From: Anaeramoeba ignava BMAN
Lineage: Eukaryota > Protista > Anaeramoebae
DNA length: 64,000 bases
Assembly: GCA_028826165.1 (NCBI GenBank)
Contig: JAPDFW010000018.1
Coordinates: 14,682-78,681, forward strand
Direction of reading: 5' to 3'
A program made the translations under genes and the position numbers. Below the pieces are notes generated by a model. That model was not told where the DNA came from and did not search any database. It saw nothing but the letters and a program-made list of their open reading frames with translations. Numbering within the stretch: the first letter of the stretch is position 1; every line of letters begins with the position of its first letter. Below, in pieces: positions 55,237-58,200 of the stretch.

Positions 55237-58200
55237 TTAAATCAATCCTTGATAATTTTGTGGAAGTAAATCTCTTGGTGTTTTTTTACTCCATGCATAT
55301 ATAGCTTTTAAATCAAAATTAGCATTAGTTTCTTTCAATAGAAGAAGCATTTCATCTGTAATTGATGGATTTTGACAAAGATAATGTAATGGAGTCCACT
55401 ATTTTATTTTGTTTTATTTTGAAAAGATTCCAAAAAAAATTATTTAATTTACAAATTTAAATTTAATTTTCTGTTTATGATGTTTTGTTTTGTTTTGTTT
55501 TGTTTTATTTTGTTTTACTCCCTTTTTTTTATTTCCAAAAAAAAAGCATTAATTTAATTTAATTTAATTTAATTTAATTTAATTATCTTATCAAATTTGT
55601 TTTTTTTACTTTCTATTTATTAATTCATTAATTAAATTGATTTATTTTTTTGATTTTTTATTCCAAATTTTATTTATTTATTTATTTATTTATTTATTTA
55701 TTTATTTATTTATTTATTTATTTATTTATTTATTTATTTATTTATTTATTTATTTATTTATTTATTTATTTATTTATTTATTTATTTATTTATTTATTTA
55801 TTTATTTATTTATTTTAATTTATTTATTTATTGATTTATTGATTTATTGATTTATTTATTTATTTATTGATTTATTGATTTATTAATTAATTGATTGATT
55901 GATTTATTGTTTTATTAATTGATTTATTGATTTATTTATTGATTGATTTATTGATTTATTGATTTATTGATTTATTACTCCCTAATTTTTAATTTTATTT
56001 TTAATAATAATTTTGAAATTTAATAAAAAAATATTATTAAATTCAAATTATATCAAAAGATTTACAATCTTATTTAATTATTTTATAATTAAAAAAAATG
56101 AATAAAAAAAGTGGAATTTTTTTGCAAATAAATGGATTTTGATTTTTGGTTAATTAATACTTCTTGTAAATTGAAATTAGCATCATTGTGAATTAAAATT
56201 CTAATCATTTCAATTGTAATTGAAGTGTTTTGGCATAATAAATGTAATGGAGATTGCTAACAAAAAAAAATAGAAAAGAGATGATTAATTTACAAAAATT
56301 ATTTTTTTTTGGATTTGTTTTTACCCACTATTTATTTTCATTTTCCAAAATAAAAACAAAAATAAAAACAAATAAATTTTTTTGATAAAAATTGAAATTG
56401 GAAATTTTTTTTTACTTTCTATTTAACAAATTTGATTTAATAAATTATTTTTTTTGGGTTGTTAAAAAAAAAGATGAAAAAAAAAAGAATACTTTCTATT
56501 TATTTTCAAAAATATAATTTTTATTTAAATTTATTTTCAAAAATTTAATTTTTAATTATGATTTCTTTTTCATTTAATTTACATTCTAAATTTTTTAAAT
56601 TGGAAATGAATTTAATTTAGATTATTTTTCTTAAAATAAAATTTTGATTTTTTTTTTTGATTTAATTCTTTTCATTTGAATTACATTCTATTAAAATAAT
56701 TTAAATTATTATTATTATTATTATTTAAATTAATTATTAAAATTTACAAGTAACTATTTAAAATAAATGAGAATGAGAATGAGAATGAAAATGGAAATAA
56801 AATTTTTATTAATTTTGTTTTGGAAAAAGAATTACATATTGAATATTGAAATCACATCTCATATTGAATAATAATTCAATTATTTCTTCTGTAATTGATT
56901 CATTTCTACATAAATCATGTAAAGGAGTCCACTTTTTATTATTAATAATATTAATAATAAATTAATTTAAATTTGTAAATTTATTTTTTTATTTTACATT
57001 CTTTTATTTTATTTAATATTATCAAGATTAATAGAATTAAACAGAATTAAATAATTTTATTTTTTACTTCCTATTTTATTCCAATTATTTTATTTTCATT
57101 TTTTAATAATTTAATTTGATTTTATTTGATTATTATTATTACAATCTATTTTGAATATGTTTTTTTTTATCAATTTAATATAATTCACAAATCAAATAAT
57201 TTCTTAGTTTTTTTTTTGATTATCAAATATAAAATAAACAAAAATTAATTAATTTCTTTTTCTTAAAATTTACATTCTAAATCAAACCAATAAATAAATA
57301 AATAAAGATTTTTAATATTTTGTTTTTGTTTTTGTTTTTGTTTTTAAAAGGAATTACAGACTAAATAATAATAACAATAATAAATTTAAAAAAGAAAGAA
57401 AGATATTGATTGATTTATTGATTGATTTATTGATTGATTTATTTTGAAGATGAATAATTTTTTAAATAAAAATTTATTACTTTCTAAATTTGGGAATGAA
57501 AAAATACACAATAAAATTATCAAATTTTTTTATAAATTAAATTTAAATTAAATAAAAAATAATTTATGAAATTTATTAAGAATATTATTTATTTTTTATT
57601 TTTTATTTTTTATTTTTACTCCTCCCTATTTAAATATTATTTAAAAAATAATAATAAATTTCCAAATAAAAAAAAAAATAGATGAATAAAATTCCAAAAT
57701 TAATTTAATTATTTATTTACTGTCTATTTTTATTTTGAAAAACAAAATTTTTTTAAGAAATGAATTAAATTTAAATTAATTATTAAATTAATAAATAAAT
57801 TACTCCATTTAAATTAAAATCTGCTCCATTAGATATCAATAATTGAATAATTTCAAATGTAATTGATTCATTTCTACATAAATAATGAACAAGAGAATCC
57901 TTTTGAAAAAATTTAAATAATTTCAATTTCAGAAATTGATTTATTGAATATTTAGTAAATTATTTATTTATTACTTTCTAAATTGTTTATTTTTAATAAA
58001 ATGAAAAAGTAAAATTGATAAATAAATTTGAAAATTTGATTCTTTTATTTTTACATACTATTTAAAAATTAATGAAAAATAAAAACAAAATATTATTAAT
58101 AGAGAAAGAAATTTAATTTGATTTTTCATTTTATACTTTCTATTAAATTAATAAGTTAAAAAAAAATAATCAATCAATTAATCAATCATTTTTATATTTA

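Follow-up and report, generated by a model that had tools for sequence, protein, structure and literature searches.

The C-terminal ankyrin repeats of a minus-strand gene of Anaeramoeba ignava BMAN (contig JAPDFW010000018.1; "the window" is the whole 64,000-nt stretch analyzed) are separated by runs of exons mostly one codon long, raising the question of whether these are always joined into long loops or selected from to produce many binding surfaces. The first-pass annotation of the locus had offered both possibilities, constitutively longer loops or a combinatorial menu of cassettes. The former is directly supported by a transcribed paralog, L027, in which one loop contains 14 cassettes and the next contains 8 (protein P0047); no positive evidence was found for the latter.

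All 18 cassettes assigned to the three over-full loops of the window gene are present on the minus strand at the coordinates in Table 1, each flanked as [TAC]AG-exon-GTA. Every core exon measures 90 or 96 nt and is in phase 0, and the seven upstream gaps contain exactly three codon exons apiece. A local joined model of the ankyrin region that includes all 39 microexons stays open for 410 aa; this model was used for frame checks only, and database searches were run per exon. Repeat spacings are 35, 35, 33, 33, 35, 35, and 35 residues upstream, followed by 41, 39, and 36 for the last three loops. The cassettes are in phase 0 and multiples of 3, so that any one is frame-neutral, as had been proposed. 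For the three loops, repeated codons reduce the 256 × 64 × 16 inclusion patterns proposed to 240 × 36 × 14 distinct loop peptides. Spacers of 3 nt within the window cluster in the ankyrin gene, on its minus strand. A possible 9-nt microexon (G-K-K, GTTTGA donor) precedes ankyrin repeat 1 at window 61861-61869 (minus), where the frame is open with or without it.

Table 1. Exons and loops of the RING-kinase-ankyrin gene in the window, in order of transcription
Feature	Position	Strand	Details
Protein kinase exon, 3′ end	63841..64000	minus	In-frame splice to Q/N exon; cut by contig end
Upstream exons of the same gene	61957..63721	minus	Q/N-rich linker (63050-63721) and helical, weakly ARM-like region
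Cores 1-7 with their codon exons, whole block	57975..61747	minus	
Ankyrin core 1	61652-61747	minus	Then DDK (three codon exons)
Ankyrin core 2	61037-61132	minus	Then KDG (three codon exons)
Ankyrin core 3	60458-60547	minus	Then KNG (three codon exons)
Ankyrin core 4	59914-60003	minus	Then GEE (three codon exons)
Ankyrin core 5	59370-59465	minus	Then KDK (three codon exons)
Ankyrin core 6	58940-59035	minus	Then KDG (three codon exons)
Ankyrin core 7	58385-58480	minus	Then KYK (three codon exons)
Ankyrin core exon 8	57804..57899	minus	96 nt, phase 0
Loop 8-9	56998..57723	minus	Eight microexons T, GG, K, S, N, I, E, N; introns 66-136 nt; starts ACA 57723, GGAGGA 57625, AAA 57483, TCT 57360, AAT 57276, ATT 57145, GAA 57070, AAT 57000
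Ankyrin core exon 9	56836..56931	minus	96 nt
Loop 9-10	56325..56753	minus	Six microexons LL, N, N, K, K, W; introns 60-99 nt; starts TTACTT 56753, AAT 56687, AAT 56585, AAA 56495, AAA 56418, TGG 56327
Ankyrin core exon 10	56161..56256	minus	96 nt
Loop 10-11	55519..56068	minus	Four microexons I, G, K, G; starts ATT 56068, GGA 55981, AAA 55612, GGA 55521
Intron in loop 10-11	55613..55978	minus	366 nt, with TAAA microsatellite at 55669-55815
Last exon	55237..55398	minus	Ankyrin repeat 11, C-terminal tail, stop

The closest relatives of the window core exons are NCBI Anaeramoeba ignava proteins. Single cores match Ank profiles weakly (E 0.001-0.2), and the paralog P0001 gives an Ank_2 match with an E value of 2.7e-24; these matches, together with a P0047 model that resembles ankyrin and DARPin structures, identify the repeats as ankyrin repeats. 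The linker exons keep the frame open into the ankyrin part, with one acceptor position approximate, and the paralog P0013 has a weak match to the LRRK2 ARM region. Paralogs carry a kinase upstream of the ankyrin part, and complete paralogs have a RING domain at the N-terminus. Since kinase sequence also lies upstream and in frame here, the locus is the 3′ end of a gene encoding a RING-kinase-linker-ankyrin protein. Near 63940, 60 nt from the contig end, its kinase exon is 4 nt shorter than that of the paralog L013, which would reflect either a frameshift or an assembly error.

The family set comprises the 12 genes whose C-terminal module is complete, drawn from 20 genome stretches; another 11 paralog regions and codon-exon arrays on C1 lie outside it. 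The last three loops are over-full in 12 of 12 genes, with 4-31 cassettes (for example 13/10/8, 12/10/7, 11/14/8, and 10/10/4 in the last three gaps, and 8/7/31 in C104), and upstream loops have no more than three. Loop peptides are mutually unrelated across the 12 genes, and the greater residue variety claimed for over-full loops holds across the family (entropy 4.0 vs 2.9 bits). Spacers between paralog cores number 379 of 3 nt, seven of 6 nt, two of 4 nt, and none of 2 nt, and no stop occurs among 399 cassette codons, against approximately 42 expected from intron composition (three near-identical genes counted). Genome-wide, a pattern of two codon exons in tandem gives 575 matches and the reversed-pattern control 112; the same pattern with 4-nt or 2-nt spacers gives 8 and 30 matches, mostly satellites. 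Chance occurrence of AG-NNN-GT in A+T-rich DNA was rejected on the basis of the 3-nt spacer excess, the clustering in the window gene, and the pattern controls. The A. ignava genome is also rich in intronless ankyrin genes, and in A. flamelloides the single relative examined is built of 35-residue repeats free of microexons.

Several variants of the arrangement occur elsewhere in the genome. One ankyrin loop at L030:4489-6757 (G000:C104) is formed by 31 consecutive 3-nt exons, with introns of 55-91 nt and no stop. In the last loop of L028, a NAGNAG tandem acceptor on one cassette would give K-D or D. Long codon-exon arrays at G000:C1:409404-413130 and C1:1058078-1073174 (minus) have introns that are near-identical in appearance and codons that differ; they are the strongest candidates for a recent gain of codon exons in tandem.

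Existing annotation does not capture these loops. The NCBI models P0001, P0006, and P0008 splice core straight to core, with the codon exons missing. These junctions were considered as evidence of skipping and rejected, given that gene predictors and aligners overlook 3-nt exons. The NCBI A. ignava proteins P0002, P0005, and P0009 are ankyrin proteins with spacing mostly of 32 residues (a BTB domain was confirmed in P0002), and their models probably also miss codon exons. A literature search, with most subscription journals outside its scope, turned up no description of ankyrin loops encoded by successive single-codon exons, and the accessible parts of the A. ignava genome paper and its supplements make no mention of microexons (PMC11550330). 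The codon-exon ankyrin loops are real, family-wide, and unannotated.

Direct evidence for inclusion comes from P0047 (EukProt EP01156_P022275; Trinity contig c20457_g1_i1.p2), the only transcript-derived family member found by homolog and representative searches of a sparse database. It is identical to the all-included model of L027 over 131 of 131 residues and contains 22 of 22 cassettes in genomic order. For L027, this shows that the cassettes are genuine spliced exons and that the long loops exist. Both marks of a spliceosomal microexon, AG/GT flanks and presence in mRNA, are found in the family, the second through L027 only. Judging from this single contig of a paralog, full inclusion is probably the main isoform, because the assembler takes the best-covered path and needs 25-mers across about eight consecutive cassettes. 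A de novo contig represents just the majority path, and P0047 places no bound on minority skipping. The P0047 ORF, typed "complete", has an internal Met as its start; contig c20457 is therefore interrupted upstream, by a retained intron or a mis-splice in or before loop 8-9, showing that splicing is not always clean. Each of the 12 introns in L027 loop 8-9 would introduce a stop if retained.

It is likely, with a probability of about 0.68, that the short introns are removed singly and in sequence, that the main mRNA contains all codon exons, and that the last four repeats carry long, hypervariable loops. Each repeat is encoded by one 90- or 96-nt core exon and by single-codon exons spelling its β-hairpin loop. 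Introns of approximately 70 nt would be defined as units and excised individually, one after another, and with introns removed one by one a 3-nt exon never needs to be recognized as an exon. Full inclusion, observed in one transcript of a paralog and extended here to the window gene, would lengthen loops by 1-6 residues in the latter and by up to 28 in a paralog. As cassettes are in phase 0, one splice-site mutation removes one residue without a frameshift, and a duplicated intron-plus-codon unit, of the kind suggested by tandem arrays elsewhere in the genome, would add one. Loop length would thus evolve by frame-neutral loss of codon exons, as seen between close paralogs, and probably also by their gain, and binding-surface diversity would arise mainly between paralogs, over evolutionary time. 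The four C-terminal repeats probably form a variable ligand-binding module coupled to the kinase and RING E3 ligase.

A more tentative proposal is that a common all-included form coexists with substantial and possibly regulated skipping of cassettes in the last three loops, as in schistosome micro-exon genes (MEGs) but at single-residue resolution. Binding surfaces would then form a repertoire within single cells or across different cells. Every cassette is frame-neutral, a single intron of approximately 150 nt suffices for skipping, and over-full clusters are restricted to C-terminal loops of high residue variety in all 12 genes. Such a menu would also explain the upkeep of a costly architecture, given that A. 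ignava and A. flamelloides have intronless ankyrin genes as well. Against it, the sole transcript has every one of its cassettes, and splice signals of long loops are no weaker than those of 3-cassette loops: GTAAA donors make up 78% and 82%, respectively, and YAG acceptors 84% vs 57%. Median intron length in the family is 72-73 nt in long and 3-cassette loops alike; in the published genome, introns are A+T-rich and their modal length is 76 nt (PMC11550330 Suppl. Note 1). Moreover, the codon-exon architecture occurs independently of any menu, as 3-cassette loops share it although repeat length requires all three of their residues. Protein searches found no second isoform, which in a sparse database counts weakly against skipping. 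It is unlikely that A. ignava draws a repertoire of ankyrin binders from codon-exon skipping in RING-kinase-ankyrin and ankyrin-BTB proteins, with full inclusion merely the commonest outcome.

Loop composition and predicted fold bear on the same proposal. Of 30 long loops, 16 have G, D, or N as the last cassette, whereas 57 of the 223 inner cassettes encode these residues (p=0.004; the paralogs are not independent), the bias predicted for a cassette that occupies the hairpin position preceding the TPLH motif. Enrichment of K/R/I/T/V in first cassettes carries no weight, since the residue set was picked post hoc. An AlphaFold model of P0047 has an ankyrin fold with a mean pLDDT of 89 (62-80 in the long loops) and matches DARPins and tankyrase ARC4. 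The splice signals, the last-cassette bias, and the fold are all compatible with skipping of inner cassettes.

Close paralogs record cassette turnover. Introns of the window gene, L013, and L014 are 86-99% identical, and their cassette content differs. In L013 the I cassette no longer has its acceptor, and loop 10-11 reads I-G-G-K-K-G in L014 vs I-G-K-G in the window gene and L013, the two extra cassettes of L014 (G, K) mapping to the 366-nt microsatellite intron of the window gene. Cassette substitutions (S/F and N/D) also distinguish the three genes. The comparison shows that single residues of the predicted loops have been removed without a frameshift between close paralogs. At L013:8618, where L014 has its extra cassettes, a 1-nt remnant of a G cassette retains intact AG and GT. 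It is either an assembly error or, if included, would put the last repeat out of frame; it must be skipped if L013 works, a point in favor of the menu. Recent tandem cassette duplication was not seen within family clusters, where introns are no more alike within a cluster than between genes, and adjacent identical residues number 16 against 16.8 expected. Gain by duplication of intron plus codon is suggested by the C1 arrays and is not detectable within the family's own clusters.

This turnover between near-identical paralogs, together with the microsatellite invasion, would also suit a neutral by-product of 92% A+T introns and intron definition, in which codon exons accumulate and decay by drift in tolerant loops, with no adaptive value in either loop length or architecture; the S/F and N/D substitutions are too few for a test of selection. 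The absence of stops, the near-absence of non-triplet cassettes, and the restriction of over-full loops to the last three positions of every gene show selection on frame and position, and make this account improbable. Hardly credible is a Dscam-style, mutually exclusive choice of about three cassettes per loop, restoring the 35-residue repeats and 3-residue loops seen in intronless relatives and upstream loops, since P0047 loops of 14 and 8 residues largely refute it for L027 and intron lengths are adequate for ordinary splicing.

The arrangement has partial parallels in known systems. In DARPins and LoopDARPins, variation is placed at ankyrin hairpin positions, and RIPK4/ANKK1-type proteins have a kinase followed by C-terminal ankyrin repeats. 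In contrast, the A. ignava loops are natural and encoded one codon per exon, and the protein has an N-terminal RING domain. Dscam1 selects one duplicated domain exon per cluster in a mutually exclusive manner. As in Dscam1, the exon arrays map to a repeat protein's binding surface, but the A. ignava cassettes are single residues, and 14 of 14 and 8 of 8 are included in P0047, the sole transcript.

Schistosome MEGs have exons of 3-81 bp, introns of up to 5 kb, and documented alternative splicing, and microexons make up most of a secreted protein (PMC4350168; bioRxiv 10.1101/2023.06.21.545858). Runs of tiny symmetric, phase-preserving exons, an expanded family, and fast divergence between paralogs are shared with A. 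ignava, where, unlike in MEGs, nearly all such exons are exactly 3 nt, introns are approximately 70 nt, and microexons spell only the loops of a folded ankyrin domain that follows a RING-kinase. Microexons encode 41 of the 410 ankyrin-region residues in the window gene, complete paralogs start with the RING-kinase, and as to a pool of isoforms generated by skipping, the one transcript observed, from a paralog, includes every cassette. The A. ignava ankyrin genes work like MEGs in their symmetric tiny exons, yet are not members of that group. Plant microexons of 1-15 nt are conserved, most commonly 9 nt, and multiples of 3 in about half of cases; in the model proposed for them, flanking introns are removed consecutively and are often retained (PMC8831610). 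Those of A. ignava are likewise overlooked by annotation and probably mostly included, presumably also by successive intron removal, but stand 3-31 in a row, each a single codon, at hypervariable positions.

Even if constitutive, 31 consecutive 3-nt exons are extreme for spliceosome mechanics, and the codon-exon loops offer a test bed for sequential, intron-defined splicing. They also provide an evolutionary dial by which single residues of a binding loop are gained or lost with the frame kept. Public protein models of these families lack their binding loops, and tandem codon-exon pairs number at least 575 in the genome. Were skipping common, it would amount to splicing-based receptor diversification at one-residue resolution in a protist with bacterial symbionts.

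Further genes occur elsewhere in the window. Two intronless RING-kinase genes lie just downstream of the ankyrin gene (window 54023-55081 and 52036-53175, minus); the first lacks an ankyrin part but shares 94% identity with the beginning of the next RING-kinase-ankyrin gene on C71. Between the two, at approximately 53520-53750 (minus), a ubiquitin-like frame was called by eye from the translation. Further away, at window 25078-35969 (+) and 40429-47163 (+), are three tandem copies of one membrane protein gene, acyltransferase-like by eye, and two copies of a gene for a repeat-rich surface protein.
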